Positions 4,180 to 41,157 of a stretch of 64,000 bases of DNA are shown here, in pieces. The translations under genes and the position numbers were made by a program. The DNA lies in the sequence record OP953026.1; one strand, written 5' to 3'. Numbering within the stretch: the first letter of the stretch is position 1; each line of letters begins with the position of its first letter. The notes under the pieces are model-generated. The model worked only from the letters and a program-made list of their open reading frames with translations, searched no databases and was not told where the DNA came from.

Positions 4180-5727
4180 TTAATATCCCCAGTCATCTCC
4201 ACCAGTGGCTTGCATATTGCTAAGACTTGGTACAAAGTCCATGTAATTGTTTTCTTCTTTATCGATATCCCATCTAATACCACCAATACGGTCTGGATCA
4301 AACGGCATAACAAAATAGTGATGCTTACTATCACTTACAACGTTACGGTGTTTACCACGTTGTACGGTTAGATAATACTTACCACTTACTTTAACAATGT
4401 GGAAGAAGAATTCCAGATCAGGTTCTTGTCCAAGTCGGCGACAACCGTCATAGTAACCTTTGTTAGCAACTTGTTTAACAAAGTCTTCTGGTGGGATATT
4501 ATCCCTGATTAGTTCTAATGCCTGAGAACTTAACTGATGCGGACTAAAGAATGTGATACCACGTGGTGCAGTATAGTTACGCATTCGCCTAAATAGGAGA
4601 CGAACGTCATCACCTGCTACACTGGTCACTAATCCAGTTTTAGGCAACATGTTTAGATAATCTACGCAGAGATATTGTAGTTCATAACCACGTGCTTGAT
4701 ATGTATCTAGGTAGTTAACTAAACCAGCAATCGTAAATTCAGTTGGGTCAAAACGATACATTACTGGTTCAAAACCATTTTCACGGAGACGAGCTGATAC
4801 ATATTCAGCTGCTTCAGCTTTACTAATAGAACTACGATCTACCTTGATACCTGTTTCATTTTCGTAAATATACTCATAAATGAAAATAAGGTTATCCGGA
4901 ATCTCATTCTCAAGAGTAATAAACATTACTAATGGTTTCTTATTGATATCACGCATGTATGGTTTATTAAATAGACACACATGGCAAAATAGACTCATAG
5001 AAACGCCAGATTTATATTGATGTTGTAGGCCACCACCGATAATAAATTCACCACGTTTTAATGCACCCAGATCACCAAGCATCCTGTTAAAACCTTTCCA
5101 TCCAGTACGGAAAGCACCATTTGGGGAAAGAATAGTTTTAGCTTCCTCAAAGAAGCCTTCAATAGAATCTAAATTACCAAAATCAAGTGCACCCATTTCA
5201 GCTGGGTGTTTCTCTTCAGCACGCGCGCGAATATATGGGTCAGCTCTGGTTGCCATTTCATTAATGATTGCCGGAATATCAGCAGAGCCTCTATTGAAAA
5301 GAATTTTTGATGAACATTCTTTTACAATAGCTTTTACCTTCTCATCAGCTAAGTAGCTATTTAGATCACGACGATATGAAGTTACACGCATGGCTAATGC
5401 CATGCCATTTGGAAATTCTTCTTCTACTGCATTTTTAACAGCATCGTATAGATAACTTTCTTCACGACAACATACTTGTAGTGATTGTAATACCTGTTGG
5501 GTAGCTGGGAAATATGCTTTCTGTTTCTTATTTAGATCCACTAGTAGATTACGAAGATCTAAAAATGTTTGTCGACCATGATCTACATCTAATGTACCAC
5601 CCTTATCATTTAGAGTATCAAGAATCTCAGTAACCAATTCATTGGATGGTTCCACTGGAGAATCTTCTCGATTTTCTAAACATAATAGAGTGATACATGA
5701 AACGAGTAATTGTTTTGGACTTGACAT
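4180..5727 (-). CDS. dnaB: DnaB-like replicative helicase (phiKZ gp118)
   Basis: SF4 motifs: TGWKGFNRMLG..LKRGEFIIGG..YKS, FITLEN, LCVDYLNML, FFSPHQLS, VQRGKHR. Confidence 0.9.
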   Translation of the reverse strand: MSSPKQLLVSCITLLCLENREDSPVEPSNELVTEILDTLNDKGGTLDVDHGRQTFLDLRNLLVDLNKKQKAYFPATQQVLQSLQVCCREESYLYDAVKNAVEEEFPNGMALAMRVTSYRRDLNSYLADEKVKAIVKECSSKILFNRGSADIPAIINEMATRADPYIRARAEEKHPAEMGALDFGNLDSIEGFFEEAKTILSPNGAFRTGWKGFNRMLGDLGALKRGEFIIGGGLQHQYKSGVSMSLFCHVCLFNKPYMRDINKKPLVMFITLENEIPDNLIFIYEYIYENETGIKVDRSSISKAEAAEYVSARLRENGFEPVMYRFDPTEFTIAGLVNYLDTYQARGYELQYLCVDYLNMLPKTGLVTSVAGDDVRLLFRRMRNYTAPRGITFFSPHQLSSQALELIRDNIPPEDFVKQVANKGYYDGCRRLGQEPDLEFFFHIVKVSGKYYLTVQRGKHRNVVSDSKHHYFVMPFDPDRIGGIRWDIDKEENNYMDFVPSLSNMQATGGDDWGY

Positions 5728-5816
5728 TTTTATAGATTTCCAATTGTGAAATTAAGAGATGTACAGTGTATCATTTAGATAGCTAGTAATTTTAGTGAAT
5801 GTATTTGCTATATTGC

Positions 5817-5820
5817 TATG
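5817..5820 (+). promoter_or_regulatory. late (nvRNAP) promoter TATG upstream of gp119 (P119L-like)
   Basis: TATG core in TATTGCTATGTAGACAG, 46 nt before the start; matches the phiKZ late consensus and my recall of P119L. Confidence 0.6.
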
Positions 5821-5866
5821 TAGACAGTTCCCAAAAGCCTAAAGTTACAATATAGGTACTTTCACA

Positions 5867-6400
5867 ATGACCCAAGTTCTGGTTATGCCAAAAGCTGTTT
5901 TTGAATCATATAAAACAGCAGGTGTACAATTTAACAAATTGTTAGACACCAACTATATAGTTTCCGAAACCTCCGTAAATGATCTTGCGGAGATACATCA
6001 GGCTTTAACTGCTTTCCCCTTTCTATTACCAGAAAAACTAGATATTAAGTTAGCAGTAAGCCCGATAATCAAAGTTGCTGAGTTAGGTGAAATAGACGGT
6101 CCTGAACAATTTAAGATGAAGGATTTACACAATCGTTTAGAGAGCCGTCTAGCGACTAATGAACTTAGGGATGCAGGTAACCGTAATTTAGTGTACGATT
6201 ATTACCTATATCCTGTAGATGAGAATCTGTGGGTTGCGGTGCAGCAGAGTGCGCACATTGCAAGTAGCGATCCTAGACGTGTCTCAATTCAACTTAACCA
6301 TACTTTCTTTGATAGTATGATAAATGAAATGTTGAACACCCGCCCACGTGAATCCGTGGCGTCAACACAAATTTTTACCTATTATTTGGAGAGCTGCTAG
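5867..6400 (+). CDS. virion head protein (phiKZ gp119)
   Basis: 177 aa directly upstream of the capsid gene; synteny. Confidence 0.8.
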   Translation: MTQVLVMPKAVFESYKTAGVQFNKLLDTNYIVSETSVNDLAEIHQALTAFPFLLPEKLDIKLAVSPIIKVAELGEIDGPEQFKMKDLHNRLESRLATNELRDAGNRNLVYDYYLYPVDENLWVAVQQSAHIASSDPRRVSIQLNHTFFDSMINEMLNTRPRESVASTQIFTYYLESC

Positions 6401-6472: not shown

Positions 6473-8716
6473 ATGAGCGTACATGCCCTAAGAGAACTGT
6501 TTAAACACAAAGGCGAAAAGAATTACGAAGTCTTCTCAATGGAAGATTTCATTGGCCGCCTAGAAAGTGAAATTGGTCTAAATGACAGCGTTGTTAGTCA
6601 AGGTCGTTCCCTTATTAGCAGCATTTCACATGAAAACTTCGGTACCGTGCAAGCTACCGACATTCAAGATGCCGCTGCAATTTATAACAAAATGCAAATG
6701 CTCGTTAACGACTATGGTTTCGAACGAGTAAGTTCCAGTGATCCTCAAGTACGTGCTCGTGAAGAACGTGTCCGTGAGAACCAAATCACTGCTGCTACCA
6801 TGGCTGCTATCGCCTGTGCTGATGAAACTAAATATATCCGTGCACTACGTGGTATTACCAAAGCTAAAGCTTCTAATGAAGATCATGTTAAGGTTGTACA
6901 GCATCAGTTCAATGGCCCTGCTGGTGGCATTCAAGTATTCGAAAATGGTGTTGGCCTAGAGAACTATAACGAGAAGTCACAGCGTGATTTCCGTGTTGTA
7001 ACTATTGGTTATAACCTAGCTGCTAGCCGTCAGGATGAATTCGCTGAGCGTATCTATCCGACCACCGTTATCAACCCGATTGAAGGTGGTGTTGTTCAGG
7101 TTCTTCCTTACATCGCTGTAATGAAAGACGTTTACCACGAAGTATCCGGCGTTAAGATGGATAACGAAGAAGTGAACATGGTAGAAGCCTATCGTGATCC
7201 TTCCATCCTCGACGACGAAAGCATTGCACTAATTCCTGCCCTAGATCCGGCTGGTTCCAATGCTGACTTCTTCGTAGACCCGGCTCTTGTTCCTCCGTAC
7301 ACCATCAAGAACGAGCAGAACCTAACTATCACTACTGCTCCGCTAAAAGCGAACGTACGTCTTGATCTAATGGGTAACTCCAATGCTAACCTACTCATTC
7401 AGCGTGGCATGCTTGAAGTTTCTGACACCATTGATCCGGCTGGTCGTCTAAAGAACCTATTCGTTCTACTCGGCGGTAAAGTTGTTAAGTTCAAGGTTGA
7501 CCGTCTACCTCGCGCTGTGTTCCAGCCCGATCTAGTTGGTGATACCCGGAACGCAGTTATCCGTTTCGATAGCGATGACCTTGTTGTTAGTGGCGATACC
7601 ACTTTCATCGACGGTTCAGCTGATGGCGTTATTAACGACCTTAAGACTGCTAAACTAAGCCTACGTCTAAGCGTTGGTTTTGGTGGTACTATCAGCCTAT
7701 CCAAAGGCGATTCTAAGTTTGGTGCTACCGACACTTACGTCGATAAAGTTCTAAACGAAGATGGCCAGGTAATGGATAATGCTGACCCGGCTGTTAAAGC
7801 TATTCTAGATCAGCTAACTGACCTAGCTGTTATCGGTTTCGAACTAGATACTCGCTTCACCAACACTAACCGTCGTCAGCGTGGTCACCTACTACAGACC
7901 CGTGCACTACAGTTCCGTCATCCGATCCCGATGCACGCTCCTGTAACTCTACCGATGGACACCATGACCGATGAAGGTCCGGGTGAGGTTGTTAAAGCTC
8001 TAACTGTTAACACCAACATCCGTAACAGCAACAACGCTGTTAAGCGCATGCTTAACTACCTTGCTCAACTACGTGAAGTTGTACACAATGGTTACAACCG
8101 TCCGAAGTTTGGTATCATCGAAGGTGCACTATCCGCTGTAATGCGTCCGACCTATCGTTACAAAGAACTAGATCTTGAGAAAGTCATCGACACCATCAAG
8201 TCTAAAGATCGTTGGGACGACGTTTGCGCTGCGATCCTAAACTGTGTTAAAGCTGAGCTATTCCCGGCTCACCGTGATTCCAACATTGAAGCTGCCTTCC
8301 GTGTTATCTCCGGTAACCAGGATGAAACTCCGATGTATCTCTTCTGCTCCGACAAAGAGATTGCTAACTATCTAATGACTAAAGGTGACGACCGTACTCT
8401 AGGTGCTTATCTCAAGTACGATATCGTTTCCACCAACAACCAGCTATTTGATGGTAAGCTAGTTGTAATTCCGACCCGCGCAGTACAACAAGAAAACGAC
8501 ATCCTCTCCTGGGGCCAGTTCTTCTACGTATCTACTGTTATCGCTGACCTACCGATCACTCGTGGTGGTCACCAGGTTACTCGCGAAATCGCGGCCATTC
8601 CGTTCAACCTACACGTCAACAACATTCCGTTCGCGCTAGAGTTCAAGATCACTGGCTTCCAGAAAGTCATGGGCGAAACTCAGTTCAACGGTAAGCTTGC
8701 TGATCTTAAGCCGTGA
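6473..8716 (+). CDS. gp120: major capsid protein (phiKZ gp120)
   Basis: 747 aa; GLE at residues 161-163 fits the known prohead-protease cleavage; highly-expressed codon usage; TGA stop. Confidence 0.95.
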   Translation: MSVHALRELFKHKGEKNYEVFSMEDFIGRLESEIGLNDSVVSQGRSLISSISHENFGTVQATDIQDAAAIYNKMQMLVNDYGFERVSSSDPQVRAREERVRENQITAATMAAIACADETKYIRALRGITKAKASNEDHVKVVQHQFNGPAGGIQVFENGVGLENYNEKSQRDFRVVTIGYNLAASRQDEFAERIYPTTVINPIEGGVVQVLPYIAVMKDVYHEVSGVKMDNEEVNMVEAYRDPSILDDESIALIPALDPAGSNADFFVDPALVPPYTIKNEQNLTITTAPLKANVRLDLMGNSNANLLIQRGMLEVSDTIDPAGRLKNLFVLLGGKVVKFKVDRLPRAVFQPDLVGDTRNAVIRFDSDDLVVSGDTTFIDGSADGVINDLKTAKLSLRLSVGFGGTISLSKGDSKFGATDTYVDKVLNEDGQVMDNADPAVKAILDQLTDLAVIGFELDTRFTNTNRRQRGHLLQTRALQFRHPIPMHAPVTLPMDTMTDEGPGEVVKALTVNTNIRNSNNAVKRMLNYLAQLREVVHNGYNRPKFGIIEGALSAVMRPTYRYKELDLEKVIDTIKSKDRWDDVCAAILNCVKAELFPAHRDSNIEAAFRVISGNQDETPMYLFCSDKEIANYLMTKGDDRTLGAYLKYDIVSTNNQLFDGKLVVIPTRAVQQENDILSWGQFFYVSTVIADLPITRGGHQVTREIAAIPFNLHVNNIPFALEFKITGFQKVMGETQFNGKLADLKP

Positions 8717-8797
8717 GCTGGAAAGGGTTACCGTTATCTAGAAAATGGGACTATCCGTTATTTGGAAGACGGTAATGCCCGGAAGTTAGAAGAGTAA
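8717..8797 (+). other. in-frame 26-codon extension after the capsid TGA (candidate readthrough product)
   Basis: GCT GGA AAG GGT TAC CGT TAT CTA GAA ... GAA GAG TAA = AGKGYRYLENGTIRYLEDGNARKLEE; no start codon before the motif; terminator 9 nt after the TAA. Confidence 0.75.
8732..8761 (+). repeat. 30-nt exact repeat, copy 1 (copy 2 at 34385-34414)
   Basis: CGTTATCTAGAAAATGGGACTATCCGTTAT. Confidence 0.95.
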
Positions 8798-15476: not shown

Positions 15477-16352
<876 letters not shown>

Positions 16353-33892: not shown

Positions 33893-34426
33893 ATGCAGGA
33901 TATCTTTCCGTATGACATGGCATCGAGGGACGCGCTAGTAAAACTTGCGCGGGATGATTTAAAAATAAACTTCAAACCAGAAACAGTTACATTTGAAGAT
34001 ATGTTTTTTAGTCCAACCACGATTGAGCCTGGACGTACATTTATTGAAATGATCGACATTACTACTGACATTAAGTACATGTTAACTTACCGTCGGTTAG
34101 ATTTTGCTGATCCACGAGCTATTGGTGAAGGATCTATCCTTAAGATAGTTGGTACTTTAACACCTAAAGCAATTGCTGAAGAAATCAACCGTTCACGGGG
34201 TTGGAAGCTTGGACCAGATGATGTTTCATTTGATACAACACCAATCAATGCAACTACGGATGTTGTTCCATACACGATAGTAGCTATGTCGAGTAGTTAT
34301 GCTTACTATGGTGAATGTAATATACTAATTCAACGTATTGATGATACATCGGATACTATCCGGCTATTAGAGAATGGCGCAGCACGTTATCTAGAAAATG
34401 GGACTATCCGTTATCTAGAAAGTTAA
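33893..34426 (+). CDS. virion structural protein (gp143-like) ending in a 3x RxLE[N]G tag
   Basis: GAGG SD; gp126/127-type body; C-terminus RLLENGAARYLENGTIRYLES. Confidence 0.88.
   Translation: MQDIFPYDMASRDALVKLARDDLKINFKPETVTFEDMFFSPTTIEPGRTFIEMIDITTDIKYMLTYRRLDFADPRAIGEGSILKIVGTLTPKAIAEEINRSRGWKLGPDDVSFDTTPINATTDVVPYTIVAMSSSYAYYGECNILIQRIDDTSDTIRLLENGAARYLENGTIRYLES
34385..34414 (+). repeat. 30-nt exact repeat, copy 2 (copy 1 at 8732-8761)
   Basis: CGTTATCTAGAAAATGGGACTATCCGTTAT, same peptide frame (RYLENGTIRY). Confidence 0.95.
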
Positions 34427-34448: not shown

Positions 34449-35270
<822 letters not shown>

Positions 35271-35353: not shown

Positions 35354-35373
35354 GAGAGTCCTTCGGGACTCTC
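35354..35373 (+). terminator. hairpin GAGAGTCC-TTCG-GGACTCTC
   Basis: 8-bp UUCG stem followed by TTATG. Confidence 0.7.
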
Positions 35374-35475: not shown

Positions 35476-37845
35476 ATGGCAAATGCTACAGACAAAGGCA
35501 AGATCAGTCAACTGCCGGATCTAGCTACTCTTAACGATAGCGAGTATATTGAATTAATTCATACCGATGCAGCTGGTCAAGTCGATAACTATAAGTTTCT
35601 GCTGTCAAAACTACAGACTGGGGCACCCGGTCTTAGTGCGTACGAGATTGCCGTTAAAAATGGTTTCCAGGGAACTGAAACCGAATGGCTTGATTCGCTT
35701 AAAGGTAAATCTTCTTATCAAATCGCAGTCGATCTAGGCTTCGTTGGTACTGAAGAAGAGTTTATAGCATCCCTTAAAGGTGATGCTGGTAAGAGTGCAT
35801 ATGAAGTAGCTGTGGAAAATGGTTTCCAAGGTACTGAACAGGAATGGTTAACATCACTGCATGCAACCATGACTGCTGAACTACTCCAGACACTCTTAAA
35901 TCAACAAGGCTATACAGTTAAAGATGTACTGCGTGTAACTGGTAAGAATGGTGGATTATCATCCAACGCTGCTTTCCATAACTTTGCTTTCCTGTTTGAT
36001 AAGCGTCTAAATCAAGACGACTTAACTGCTGGTGATAAAGTACCTCAGCGTATGATGGAACAAGGTCGTATGGAGGCAGAAGGTTATTCTTATCTAAAGA
36101 ACGCCTCTGCACCCACTACGCAAGGTGCATTACCCGAATTACCTGAGTCTGAAATTCGTATTTATGACAATGGTGAATTCCAGATTGGTAGTTTAACTGA
36201 TTACATTGCATTCAAGAATGACGGCAATATCCGTATTGTTGAAGGCGTTGATGAAACAATTGTTGATCTTAAGAACCTTCCTAAAAACGAAGGTATTAGT
36301 GGCGGTGTATTCGTCAAAGATGTACAAGCAACTGATCCCAGTCAGAACGTAGGTAGTATTGTGCGTACCCCTGATGGACACAGCGTACAGTCATGCCTAT
36401 CGACTACTAGTAATGTTCGGGTTATCGTTGATGCAATAACTGGACATTCTAGTTATGTACCTAGTGTTAAAATCAATAACGTAGATGCAGTTGTAACTCC
36501 TGGCGTTAATCCACCTATGTGGATTGCTACCGCCGATATTGATCTTGGTGCACCTACTACTGAAGGTTATGCTGATATTGTTGTAGAACACGCCGATGGG
36601 GCTAAATTCACTACTAAGGTATTAGCCGATACTCCCGCTAATATTACCAGTGCTGTATTTACTGGCGGTTATCCGTTAGGTCAAACAGAACTTAAAGAAG
36701 ATGACCTTGTTGCAATTAAAGTTGTTACTGATGAAAATATAGTAGCATACGAAATTGCTGACTTTGGTGCACTGAAAGAAAGTAGTGGTACTGTTGCACC
36801 TACTAAAGAACTAGAGGTTACTGGTCTTTACGTAGCTGATCGTGGTAATACTACTAAGGCATATGGTTTCCGTGTACGTGTTCAGAAATCAACTGGATCA
36901 TGGTCAGAATGGTTTACTTCCAGTGATGCTGGTTCCGAAGATAAAATTAACACTATGCAGTTAAACGATCTTCGCCCAGTTGTTAATATTGGTCAAGTAA
37001 CTTATCCGTCTGGTCAAAGTGCTATTAAAGTAGGTGAAACTGCTACTGTAGCCAATACGGTATCTAATGCTGATAGTGTGGTTTATTCCTCACCAAATGA
37101 TCAGCTTACTATAACCAGTGCAAATGAAGCAGAAATTGCTAAGGTAGTTACTTATAAGTCAGGTACTTATAACGACAGCACTAATAACCTATTAATTACT
37201 GCTAAACGTGCAGCTAATGGTAGTGTAGCTACAGCTACTGCTGTTGTGGCTATTGCAAATGCGGCACCTACTGCGATGGTTACCTACCCTGCTGCTCGCC
37301 TTCGTTCAGGTGGTAACTTTGGAACCCAAGTACAAAGTCATGTCATTACTTTAACCTCTACTCAGAAACTAAGTGCAGCTCCGGCCATGAATGCGCCTGG
37401 CGGTAAGTGGGCTACTGAGGATTGGAAATCTGATGCCACTGGTAAGGTATGGACACGTGCATTACTAGTACATGATGATGATCCTAAAGGAACCTACGAT
37501 TTTAACAGTGTGGTTCTAAAAGGTTTAGCTGGTGTTGAAGCTAATAGTGTAAATGGTGGTACTTATGTACTAGGTGGATTTGTATTCCGCACTCTAAGTG
37601 TGGCTGCTTGGCCGAACCGTGAAACTGATATTGGTACTGAAGTAACCAATACTGGTAAACTACGTTGCAGTAACCTATCTAAAGGTTCTACTGGTAGCTT
37701 AAACTTCACTTATAAGGCGGATGATGCAAATCAAGTTGACACCTACACCATCAAGGATGGCAATAAGTGGTATAACTGTGACTCAGCAAACGCTGTGTCC
37801 AACACCACTGGACTGATGAAAATCGAACTTGAGGAAGTAGTATAA
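35476..37845 (+). CDS. virion fibre-associated protein (gp145-like)
   Basis: N-terminal KISQLPDLATL module; 3x SAYxxAVxxGFxGTExEWLxSL repeats; beta-rich Ig-like C-half. Confidence 0.85.
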   Translation: MANATDKGKISQLPDLATLNDSEYIELIHTDAAGQVDNYKFLLSKLQTGAPGLSAYEIAVKNGFQGTETEWLDSLKGKSSYQIAVDLGFVGTEEEFIASLKGDAGKSAYEVAVENGFQGTEQEWLTSLHATMTAELLQTLLNQQGYTVKDVLRVTGKNGGLSSNAAFHNFAFLFDKRLNQDDLTAGDKVPQRMMEQGRMEAEGYSYLKNASAPTTQGALPELPESEIRIYDNGEFQIGSLTDYIAFKNDGNIRIVEGVDETIVDLKNLPKNEGISGGVFVKDVQATDPSQNVGSIVRTPDGHSVQSCLSTTSNVRVIVDAITGHSSYVPSVKINNVDAVVTPGVNPPMWIATADIDLGAPTTEGYADIVVEHADGAKFTTKVLADTPANITSAVFTGGYPLGQTELKEDDLVAIKVVTDENIVAYEIADFGALKESSGTVAPTKELEVTGLYVADRGNTTKAYGFRVRVQKSTGSWSEWFTSSDAGSEDKINTMQLNDLRPVVNIGQVTYPSGQSAIKVGETATVANTVSNADSVVYSSPNDQLTITSANEAEIAKVVTYKSGTYNDSTNNLLITAKRAANGSVATATAVVAIANAAPTAMVTYPAARLRSGGNFGTQVQSHVITLTSTQKLSAAPAMNAPGGKWATEDWKSDATGKVWTRALLVHDDDPKGTYDFNSVVLKGLAGVEANSVNGGTYVLGGFVFRTLSVAAWPNRETDIGTEVTNTGKLRCSNLSKGSTGSLNFTYKADDANQVDTYTIKDGNKWYNCDSANAVSNTTGLMKIELEEVV

Positions 37846-40800
37846 TGGCTTCTGCATTTGAAGATTATGTAAACGGGGAACTCCCCAAACGGGTATCATC
37901 AATTGATGAGCCCACTTCTGTAGTTAATGGACACATCCCGGTTTCTACCGGGGTGGGTCTTAATACTACTTTCGTTGATCCTGTTACTATACCTGGATTA
38001 AAGGGTGAAGATGGTCAGCCGGGTAAAGATGGCGAACAAGGCCCTCCTGGCCCAGTTGGTCCGGCTATTAACATTATCGCTAATGTTGATCTAGCAACAT
38101 TCGAACAAGATATTAAACCATTAGATACGCATAATGTCGGTGATGCTTGGTTCGTTGAAGATCGGCTATGGGTGTGGGAATCACCGCTAGGTAATGAAGA
38201 CCCCCCTGTAAAAGGTCGTTGGGTTGAAACAGGTTCACTTCGTGGTCCAGATGGTACTGGTCTAGTTATCCGTGGTCGTTGGCCTAATAACTTAGAATTA
38301 CCTAAGACTGAAAGTAATAAACCTGGAGATGCTTATTCATGGAATAATCAACTCTGGGCGTGGATGCTTATCTCAGGTAATAATCCGCCAGAGAATCCAA
38401 CTATTGATGACTATGATTGGTTCCCAGTTACACCACAGGGTGAACGTGGACCTGAGGGCCCTGAAGGTCCGCAAGGTAAAGATGGTGAAATTGGTCCTGA
38501 AGGTCCTCAGGGTGAACCAGCAATGCCGTTTACCATTAAGGATTCACTACCATCACCAGCTGATTTACCTGATCCATCTGTAGCTAAAGAATCAGAAGCA
38601 TACTTAGTTACTATGGAAGCTGGTAAACCAGAACATCTATTCATCTTTGTAAAAGGGGCATGGTCAGACCTAGGTACTTTCCAAGGCCCTGAGGGCCCAC
38701 AAGGTAAACCAGGTAATACAGGTGATCCGGGTCCCGATGGTAAACAAGGTGAACCTGGTCCACAAGGTCGTAACTTAGAAGTAGTTAAAGCAGTTGAAAC
38801 TGCTGATGATCTATTAACCACCACTGGTGTAGAACAATACCAAGGTGTTTCAGTACGTTCCACCAATACGGTTTATGTACTGACTGGCCAAGATCCGACT
38901 GTTGATATCTCATGGACAGCCATGGGTTCATTCCGTGGCCCGCAGGGCCCTGAAGGTCCGCAAGGTGAAGATGGCGAACAAGGTCTACCTGGTGAACCAG
39001 GGGCACAAGGTAAATCGGCTTTCCAAGTAGCATTGGACAATGGCTTCACTGGTACTGAGGGTGAATGGTTAATCAGTCTACATGGTAAGAACGTAGTTAT
39101 TACTGGTGCTGTTGCCAATGAGGCAGCCCTGCCGGCAGATGCTCCTGATCAGGCAGCGTACTTCACACAAGACACATCTACCTTATTTGTTAAGATAGAT
39201 GGTAATTGGGTAAATAGTGGTACACATCGAGGTCCTAAAGGTGAAGATGGCGCACCTGGTAAAGACGGTGATCAGGGACCAGAAGGACCCGAGGGACCAG
39301 AAGGCCCACAAGGTCCCGCTGGTGAACCTATCCAGATCATCGCAGCGATTGACACTCCTGAAGATACCCCACCAGAAGCACTTGCCGATAACCAATGGAA
39401 AGCATATACTGTTAAGTCCACGGGCGAAGTATTTGTTAACATGGACGGTAGTCGCTGGACTAGCATTGGTATTATGGCAGGTCCGCAAGGTAAACCGGGT
39501 GAAGGTTTAAACATTAAAGGTGTTTTAACCGATGCTTCACAACTACCAAAGAAAGACACTGATCCTGACTTAGTAACTGGTGATTCATACTGGGTTGAAA
39601 CTAACGAAGGTACAATGCTCTATACTTACCAAGGTCAGGAAATTGATGGCTATATCGGCCCAATTAATCTAAATGGTGAGCAGGGTATCCAGGGTGTCGA
39701 AGGCCCACAAGGTCCTGAAGGTAAACAAGGTGGTGGTCTATTAATTATCTATGTTGGTGATGATGCTGGTAAACCAGTAGCATCTGCTGATAACGTAGGT
39801 AAAGGTATTGCCATTCGCACCAATACTGAAGGACAAGTAGAAGTATTTGTAAGTATCGATACTGAAGGTACATTTACTTGGGAAAGCCTAGGTGTCTTAG
39901 CCATGGGTCCGCAGGGTCCTGAAGGTCCTGAGGGCAAACAAGGTGTTCCAGGTATCCCTGGTAAAACCGGTCAGAAAGGTGAACGTGGATCCTCTTGGGT
40001 AATTCTACCTGAAGGTCAAACTGCACCCACTTCTATCGATGGTAATCGTGGTGACTGGTGTATCGACAAAACTGGTACCGTTTGGTATAAAGATGCTAAC
40101 TGGGTTGTATTCTACAAATTAATGTCAGTTCCAGTTAGTGAAGTCGATCCAGAAGATGTCGATAAGAAAATGGTTCGGTACAAACTCGGTTGGACTGAAC
40201 TACCTGTTGATGAGGTGGTAGATGCTGAAGTAGGTGTCTTCTATGGTCGCCGTAAAGCAACCGCTGACGGGGCTGTTGAATGGACTGCTATTGAATTACC
40301 AACACCTGCCATTGATGCTGTACCTAGTCCAGTTGTTAATGCACAATACGTTCGTAAAGGTATTGCAGGGGGTGAAACTGAATGGGCTACCATTACATTC
40401 CCAGAAATTCCTTCAGATGTAGTACGCGATACTGCACAAGCTACTAAGCCTCAAGGTCGTGTAGCTGGTAACTGGGTTGATGTAGCACCTCTGCAAACCG
40501 ATGATACTCTAATGGGTATGCAAAATGGTGAATGGGTAGCTGTACCAGCCGCAGTTATTGGTGAAGTACCTAGTGAAGGTGCTAATGGCACTAACTATGT
40601 ACGTGAGAAAACAGCTAGTGGTTCTAAATGGACACCTGTAACTATTATAGTTGATCAAGCTGATGCTACTAGTGGACAACTATTCCTACGTAATGCTGCG
40701 GCTAAATCATGGACTCTATTCCAAGGTCCGAATAATGATGTAACCGCTGATGGTGATTGGCTACGTAGCCGTACTGGTACTAATATTACTTGGAAGAAGC

Positions 40801-41137: not shown

Positions 41138-41157
41138 GCCCTCCCTTCGGGGAGGGC
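41138..41157 (+). terminator. hairpin GCCCTCCC-TTCG-GGGAGGGC
   Basis: Identical to the 8807-8826 hairpin; T-rich tail. Confidence 0.85.

Follow-up and report, generated by a model that had tools for sequence, protein, structure and literature searches.

We analysed a 64,000-nt stretch of DNA from sequence record OP953026.1 (hereafter the window), with a focus on positions 35476–37845, which encode the virion- or fibre-associated protein gp145. The window region is 99–100% identical to phiKZ-like Pseudomonas aeruginosa jumbo phages and encodes a phiKZ-type gp144 endolysin, and therefore gp143, gp145 and gp146 are numbered here after phiKZ (Table 1). Two elements of this locus are of interest: a module at the N-terminus of gp145, which we call the KIS module, and a tag of three short units at the C-terminus of gp143. 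Comparison of both elements across phages suggests that they are matched parts of a docking system, which would fasten a fibre protein to the virion.

The original prediction had singled out codons 1–48 of gp145 (35476–35620) as a candidate receptor for this tag, and the N-terminal sequence that it quoted is an exact match. As it stated, gp145 lies two genes downstream of the tag-ending gp143, with the gp144 endolysin gene in between. It had also described gp145 as translationally coupled to gp146; of this claim the overlap of the two genes holds, as the gp145 stop codon TAA (37843–37845) and the gp146 start codon ATG (37845–37847) are joined as TAATG. The collagen triple-helix repeat PF01391 matches gp146 at 87.6 bits (cut-off 27.2), with six G-x-y stretches.

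Table 1. Features of the window that bear on gp145 and the three-unit tag.
Feature	Coordinates	Strand	Basis or remark
Major capsid gene (PhiKZ_MCP)	6473..8716		
Capsid gene TGA and in-frame extension with second tag copy	8714..8797	+	TGA 8714–8716, 26 codons 8717–8794, then TAA
gp126, DUF7941 protein	15477..16349	−	DUF7941 (PF25613) at 97.5 bits
gp143, short DUF7941-like virion protein bearing the tag, 177 aa	33893..34426	+	phrog_2935, weak DUF7941
gp143 C-terminal tag, residues 157–177	34361..34423	+	three 8-residue units
gp144 endolysin, between tag gene and KIS gene	34488..35270	+	PG_binding_1 plus SLT
Terminator-like hairpin between gp144 and gp145	35354..35373	+	
gp145, virion/fibre-associated protein, 789 aa	35476..37845	+	
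gp145 residues 1–47, N-terminal KIS module	35476..35616	+	alignment, AF2 model, HMM
gp145 residues 47–136, three short helix-turn-helix repeats of the S-A-Y-E...W-L-x-S-L-K-G kind	35614..35883	+	fibre PHROG matches, AF2 model
gp146, collagen-like fibre protein, 1093 aa	37845..41126	+	PF01391
Second terminator-like hairpin, after gp146	41138–41157		closes the gp145–gp146 unit

The KIS module of gp145

The KIS module consists of an arm, K-I-S-x-h, followed by G-x-E-x-x-E-h-h and a beta-hairpin. In gp145, the core residues are K9-I10-S11 (within K-I-S-Q-L) and E23-Y-I-E26-L-I, which fit the expression [KR]-[ILV]-[ST]-x-h plus E-x-x-[E/P]-h-h. Most members of the module continue with Gln-x-Gly, in place of which chimalliviruses have a longer hairpin. 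An alignment of 12 chimallivirus copies revealed S11, E23, E26, G34, N38, Y39 and K45 as invariant, and the proline of K-I-S-Q-L-P, which had been counted as part of the motif, varies among these relatives. Within the window, K-I-S-x-L-P occurs in gp145 only. An AlphaFold2 (AF2) model of gp145 residues 1–110 features an extended arm (8–22), a beta-hairpin (24–30/36–42) and then helix-turn-helix repeats, with predicted local distance difference test (pLDDT) scores of 80–87 over residues 20–40 and the hairpin. Using a hidden Markov model (HMM) built from 18 non-chimallivirus modules, we found a match to gp145 residues 8–35 (E 9e-7; next best open reading frame [ORF], 1.6). gp145 is the single significant ORF for this HMM in the whole window, and its likeness to non-chimallivirus modules exceeds chance. 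The same HMM did not detect the N-terminus of gp146 as a KIS module.

Relatives of the first ~47 residues were found in IMG/VR on two to three paralogous proteins per genome, which are 200 to 1500 aa long, and a common N-terminal module joined to quite different distal parts is the hallmark of a shared anchor. The module lies 1–5 residues from the N-terminus in most of the IMG/VR cases. Similarly, a profile of the 12 copies gave 48 matches among 1.84 billion proteins; the single-stretch matches all start at residues 1–13, and the weakest matches grade into a general form, K-I-S-E-h ... G-x-E .... In 201phi2-1/Psa21-like phages, a small protein is encoded between the KIS paralogues (L005, L006 and L007, around 5260–5870). 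Its N-terminus presumably resembles the start of Mtd-type fibres (Q-V-K-R-G-T-T-A ...), and if so would represent a second kind of fibre N-terminus in that KIS cluster.

The remainder of gp145 resembles fibre proteins. Beyond its own phrog_15433, the PHROG matches of gp145 begin only at residue 47, in S-A-Y-E fibre-type repeats. Helix-turn-helix repeats of the S-A-Y-E...W-L-x-S-L-K-G kind are common in phage fibres. Many GenBank and RefSeq records, as well as phrog_15433, label gp145 as a tail sheath, and it is also called a tail assembly protein. The sheath assignment is not supported, as gp145 has no Pfam sheath match and its other PHROGs are of fibre type; moreover, published phiKZ work names gp29 as the sheath and calls gp145 a putative tail fibre.

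Other searches with the module returned little. gp145 matches no Pfam family, and a word-based protein search with residues 1–50 returned gp145 itself as the sole match. Using tblastn against isolate phages, we found the module in Pseudomonas chimalliviruses only, plus one chance match in an Anoxybacillus phage tail gene. Foldseek with the model of residues 1–110 gave nothing below E 0.28, and every score in a part-search of the ESM Atlas was below 0.9. Profile searches of the PDB with the module and the tag yielded noise only, namely matches to leucine-rich repeats and to a designed beta-trefoil in which a unit reads R-I-L-P-D-G, and searching the literature by motif strings of either element retrieved unrelated text only. 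Taken together, the KIS module and the tag are absent from Pfam, the PDB and the searchable literature, and have no fold match.

Tag genes and module genes as neighbours

The consensus of the tag is three 8-residue units of R-x-L-E-[DN]-G-x-x, and gp143 ends in three R-x-L-E-[NS]-(G) units followed by TAA. Within the gp143 tag, R157, L159, E160, G162, R165, E168, G170, R173 and E176 are invariant in 6 homologues. A monomer model of gp143, of low confidence overall, leaves the tag disordered, with pLDDT below 40 for residues 151–177. gp143 matches phrog_2935 over its full length and approaches DUF7941 (PF25613) at 18.3 bits, which is below the Pfam cut-off of 27 and covers profile positions 68–153 only. 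Tag-bearing homologues of gp143 are present in 69 records of Pseudomonas phages. The annotation of gp143 homologues is "virion structural protein" in the records of phiKZ, PhiPA3, 201phi2-1, Phabio and Noxifer. The tag has a second copy in the window: the capsid gene ends in TGA, and the three-unit tag recurs in the next 26 in-frame codons, which include a run of 30 nt that is also present, unchanged, in gp143. The tag occurs nowhere else in the window, and a nearly complete phiKZ-like genome holds the tag pattern at these two places only and a single module, that of gp145. No protein was found in which tag and module are fused in one chain.

We then scanned IMG/VR with a DNA pattern for the three-unit tag, which yielded 90 stretches on contigs of mostly ordinary size. 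The tag was nearly always located 0–4 residues from the stop codon of proteins of 60 to 680 aa, and for many of these genes the next gene begins 0–27 nt away on the same strand and starts with a KIS module. In 26 non-redundant non-jumbo cases, a simple N-terminal KIS motif was present in the next gene in 15, compared with 13 of 1157 other ORFs that served as background (p 3e-20). An HMM built from chimallivirus modules only gave the same picture (7/26 against 1/1157, p 8e-12). For the reverse scan, we used a module pattern that holds no tag information and obtained 87 IMG/VR stretches, with 72 non-redundant module genes that have an upstream ORF. The upstream protein ends in the tag, scored as a tail of 8-residue-periodic Glu, for 49 of these 72 genes (~70%); among randomly drawn windows of 36 residues, 0.3% match the loose tag expression. 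From stop to start, the median gap between tag gene and module gene is about 3 nt. The tag usually has three units, counting a weaker third, and never more than four in sets assembled blind to the tag. Erythrobacter phage R6L provides an example from an isolate: its gp79 (916 aa) ends in the tag, and gp78, which carries the module, starts at the next base. The original prediction had stated that KIS-type modules often occur together with LLEDG/RLLE-type repeats and called for a co-occurrence analysis; run on IMG/VR, that analysis places tag and module genes next to each other far above background in both directions (15/26; 49/72), in agreement with that statement.

The window departs from this arrangement in that the tag gene is two genes upstream, with gp144 between, as in other Pseudomonas chimalliviruses. 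gp144 is missing at this position in RAY and in L025, where tag gene and KIS gene are adjacent. According to the phiKZ structural atlas, gp144 is also part of the virion, with six of its copies serving as wedges that hold the neck whiskers (gp34) to the sheath.

The tag is carried by a diverse set of proteins, from at least 28 unrelated families. When the upstream proteins were compared by BLASTP without their tails, they formed 28 clusters with no relation to each other, which include Phage-tail_3 (J-like), DUF2612 (a baseplate wedge according to the literature), DUF7941, a major-tail-protein-like protein and baseplate-like proteins. Proteins that bear the module look like fibres, with collagen, S-A-Y-E repeats, or membership of minor tail or head-decoration families. 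On a contig of 55.7 kb (L120:6561-7088, minus strand), a 176-aa protein that passes the DUF7941 cut-off (39.6 bits) ends in the tag and precedes a KIS gene; either this contig represents only part of a jumbo phage genome, or the published restriction of DUF7941 to chimalliviruses does not hold. Tag-bearing proteins of ~165 aa that resemble the major tail protein (phrog_1407) were seen in L030, L033, L052, L058, L061, L074, L078 and L084, with no module in the next gene; in L084, a KIS gene lies 7.5 kb beyond. If tail-tube subunits carry tags, fibres might be located along the tube. Finally, some proteins of L014, L020, L049, L055, L059, L073 and L089 carry the three-unit tag at the N-terminus rather than the C-terminus, and in L020 a KIS-like gene is directly upstream of such a protein.

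Covariation of tag and module, and the chimalliviruses compared

A third IMG/VR scan was aimed at modules in which Pro replaces the second Glu (G-x-E-x-x-P-h-h-Q); it returned at least 118 stretches and enabled comparison of two module types. Among 57 non-redundant genes with Glu-type modules, 45 are preceded by a tail that contains two or more Glu at a spacing of 8 residues, and the residue three before Glu is Arg in 106 of 117 instances. The corresponding tails, upstream of 69 of the 105 non-redundant genes with Pro-type modules, have Ile, Leu or Val at this position in 151 of 162 instances and Arg in none (0/162). Both matched types occur inside the same carrier families, i.e., a family of 519–921 aa that includes Phage-tail_3-positive proteins and a family of 162–178 aa, and they also occur inside the chimalliviruses, in which phiKZ has Arg tags with an E23...E26 module and RAY has Leu tags with a Pro module. 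Because tag and module co-vary, they are very probably a portable pair that fastens fibres to virions. Furthermore, a residue-specific switch, Arg with Glu and hydrophobic with Pro, is the pattern predicted by a shared interface, which suggests that in the window the tag Arg would contact gp145 E26.

The tags of one clade have I-E-C or I-V-C as their last residues, and the modules downstream of them carry a Cys that follows S-[KR]-x (7/8 pairs; loci L103, L112, L113, L114, L116, L124, L133, L137 and L167), and this Cys pair could be a disulfide between tag and module. Two isolates differ from the general pattern. In Ralstonia phage RsoM2USA (L183:3092-4193), a degenerate 8-periodic tail without Arg or Glu precedes a Tyr-type module, and in Aeromonas phage ZPAH14 (L182), a Pro-type module follows a small protein annotated as a tail fibre that has no tail. 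These cases indicate that the pairing rule has weak or lost instances.

The genomic evidence could also arise if tag and module lie side by side without touching each other. Both might serve a third partner, such as a chaperone of assembly or a baseplate pocket that they share, or their junction might be preserved as a unit for the swapping of fibre genes or the coupling of expression. Tag and module genes are tightly coupled, with a gap of only a few nucleotides or an overlap, and co-transfer of the junction would yield matched types as well. However, both elements are conserved at the protein level across very diverse DNA, and the tag is also found away from KIS genes, i.e., in the capsid extension, in gp143 with gp144 between, and at some N-termini. 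Together with the residue-specific switch, which is expected of a shared interface, these observations make an arrangement without contact quite improbable.

We also compared tag and module among chimalliviruses. Both are present in phiKZ-like phages, Noxifer and RAY, and both are absent from Goslar. Noxifer has two tags and the module. Erwinia phage RAY has one tag-like tail and the module: a short DUF7941 protein with Leu-type units is followed 60 nt later by a collagen fibre with a Pro module, and the RAY capsid gene ends in TAA without an extension. The genome of Goslar (L011, NC_048170) lacks the KIS module as well as the R-x-L-E tag. The Goslar capsid gene also has TGA as its stop codon, followed by 28 in-frame codons that repeat the C-terminal tail of gp23, a short DUF7941 protein, with a common D-N-V-A-D-G-F core and synonymous DNA differences (L011:33290-33442, minus strand; L011:6863-7405, plus strand). 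Thus, Goslar follows a phiKZ-like logic with a different peptide.

These features of Goslar weigh against gp145 as the receptor of the tag and raise an alternative, in which the tag is a docking peptide of the DUF7941 filament family. The Goslar paper (PMC13742148) names phiKZ gp126, gp127 and gp143 as DUF7941 proteins and predicts that such proteins assemble head-to-tail into oligomers, in which the disordered tail of one protein docks on the N-domain of the next; gp22 filaments are shown, and a phiKZ gp126–gp127 dimer was fitted into outer baseplate density. That the Goslar extension copies a DUF7941 tail in a genome without a KIS module fits this alternative, and an interim reading of ours, in which the tag binds the DUF7941 N-domain and not gp145, followed from it. 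We downgraded that reading after the adjacency and covariation results. The same tag is found on many non-DUF7941 carriers, each directly upstream of a KIS gene, and tag and module co-vary, which for the phiKZ-type tag outweighs the Goslar evidence. In addition, gp126 lacks the tag, gp127 has a single tag-like unit, and the Goslar tail is of a different sequence in a phage without the tag. We therefore consider docking within the DUF7941 family to be an unlikely explanation of the phiKZ-type tag.

A proposed docking pair and its known counterparts

We propose, with a probability of about 0.68, that the gp145 module and the three-unit tag form a matched docking pair that fastens gp145 to the carriers of the tag, and that gp145 residues 1–47 are the phiKZ version of a widespread, undescribed N-terminal attachment module of phage fibre proteins. 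The comparative support is strong and consists of the homology of the module, gene adjacency in both directions, joint presence or absence in four chimallivirus genera, and residue covariation. Direct binding, the Arg–Glu contact, a correspondence between the three units and a trimeric fibre, and the location within the virion are predicted from these sequence patterns.

The cognate partner of the module would be a C-terminal three-unit tail borne by a platform protein of the virion, whose gene normally lies immediately upstream. Phages of the phiKZ type would display this tail on gp143 and on a few capsid subunits that arise from TGA read-through, and gp145 has the only matching module. The disordered tail is likely to fold onto the arm and hairpin of gp145, with strand addition as the probable mode, such that the Arg of each tag unit faces the invariant E26. 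In this way gp145 would be fastened to gp143 and to rare capsid subunits, and the overlap of their genes suggests that gp146 is presumably carried along. A combined view with the DUF7941 predictions is conceivable, in which the N-domain of gp143 would sit on a DUF7941 chain or the baseplate and its tail would hold gp145. We speculate that each chain of a trimeric fibre takes one tag unit, and perhaps the three units form one pseudo-threefold turn, which would match a monomeric carrier to a trimeric fibre.

Several observations count against this proposal, in addition to those from Goslar. Published work describes gp143 as a cytoplasmic regulator of the holin gp142: deletion of gene 143 delays lysis by about 15 min, gp143 shifts the triggering time of gp142, and AlphaFold 3 (AF3) predicts a gp142–gp143 complex. 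gp143 might then be a lysis regulator only, with a tail that serves holin control and a likeness to fibre-linked tags that is irrelevant in phiKZ. However, the predicted holin contact is through gp143's first globular domain and not its tail, the homologues are annotated as virion structural proteins as noted above, and the same tag follows the capsid gene, all of which renders a role in lysis alone very improbable. Transposon insertion sequencing (Tn-seq) recovered five insertions in orf143 and none in gp145 or gp146, which indicates that gp143 cannot be the only essential anchor and that gp145 fulfils its essential role independently of gp143. For about 30% of KIS genes, no tail can be recognised in the gene before them, and the tag family of 165-aa, major-tail-protein-like proteins is followed by a gene without a module. 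The IMG/VR contigs are related to each other, and therefore the adjacency and covariation counts overstate independence; a small number of switches during evolution, or joint transfer of the whole gene junction, may account for the covariation.

The original prediction had envisaged a plug and socket that hangs gp145–gp146 fibres on head and tail. Adjacency, joint presence or absence, and covariation support a matched pair of tag and module, and the Tn-seq result speaks against gp143 as the sole anchor. Beyond phiKZ, the pair could be a general, portable tag-and-socket of tailed phages, in which a three-unit tail that can be joined to any protein of the virion would recruit whichever fibre has a KIS module at its start, and at least two specificity classes (Arg/Glu and hydrophobic/Pro) switch together. 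The carriers would then be the capsid by stop read-through, the tail tube, the J-like tip, the baseplate wedge and DUF7941. We regard this broader proposition, carriers included, as an even bet.

gp145 and gp146 are essential in phiKZ, and its structural atlas places neither. If the proposal is correct, the occurrence of tag and module with at least 28 unrelated carriers would give a simple rule to predict which protein holds which fibre in uncultured phages, and the pair would explain the conserved read-through tail of the phiKZ capsid gene. It would also offer phage engineering a compact natural handle for attaching or swapping receptor-binding proteins. The predicted contact between the tag Arg and gp145 E26 makes the idea directly testable.

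Fibres and tailspikes of other phages are also anchored by their N-termini, as with T7 gp17 on the gp11/gp12 adaptor-nozzle, T4 gp34 on gp9, and the branched gp63.1–gp66 system of G7C. In those systems, as proposed here, the N-terminal part of a trimeric fibre fastens to the virion and variable distal parts are exchanged, a pattern also seen in phiKZ relatives with two to three paralogues that share the N-terminal module and differ distally. In contrast, the partner here is apparently a three-unit peptide of ~22 residues that is portable among unrelated carriers (capsid, J-like tail tip, baseplate and DUF7941).

The capsid extension recalls recoded minority structural subunits such as gp17.1*, which SPP1 makes by frameshift in its tail tube. 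In both cases a small share of a major structural protein would gain a C-terminal addition with an extra function. Unlike gp17.1*, the putative capsid addition here would be the same predicted docking tag as that of gp143, placed after a TGA stop.

A further counterpart is the published proposal of DUF7941 docking in Goslar (PMC13742148), in which the disordered C-terminal tail of a small virion protein docks and builds host-recognition fibres, and which lists gp143 as a member. In phiKZ as in Goslar, the read-through extension of the capsid gene is a copy of such a tail. The two proposals differ in that the receptor in Goslar would be the DUF7941 N-domain, with a tail of another sequence and neither tag nor KIS module.

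Finally, as an analogy only, the pair resembles cohesin–dockerin and SpyTag–SpyCatcher in that a short portable peptide on many carriers would meet one receptor module, with specificity classes that switch together. It has no sequence or fold relation to those systems, and a covalent link is hinted at only in the Cys-pairing clade. If correct, the KIS module and its tag would be a phage counterpart of cohesin–dockerin.

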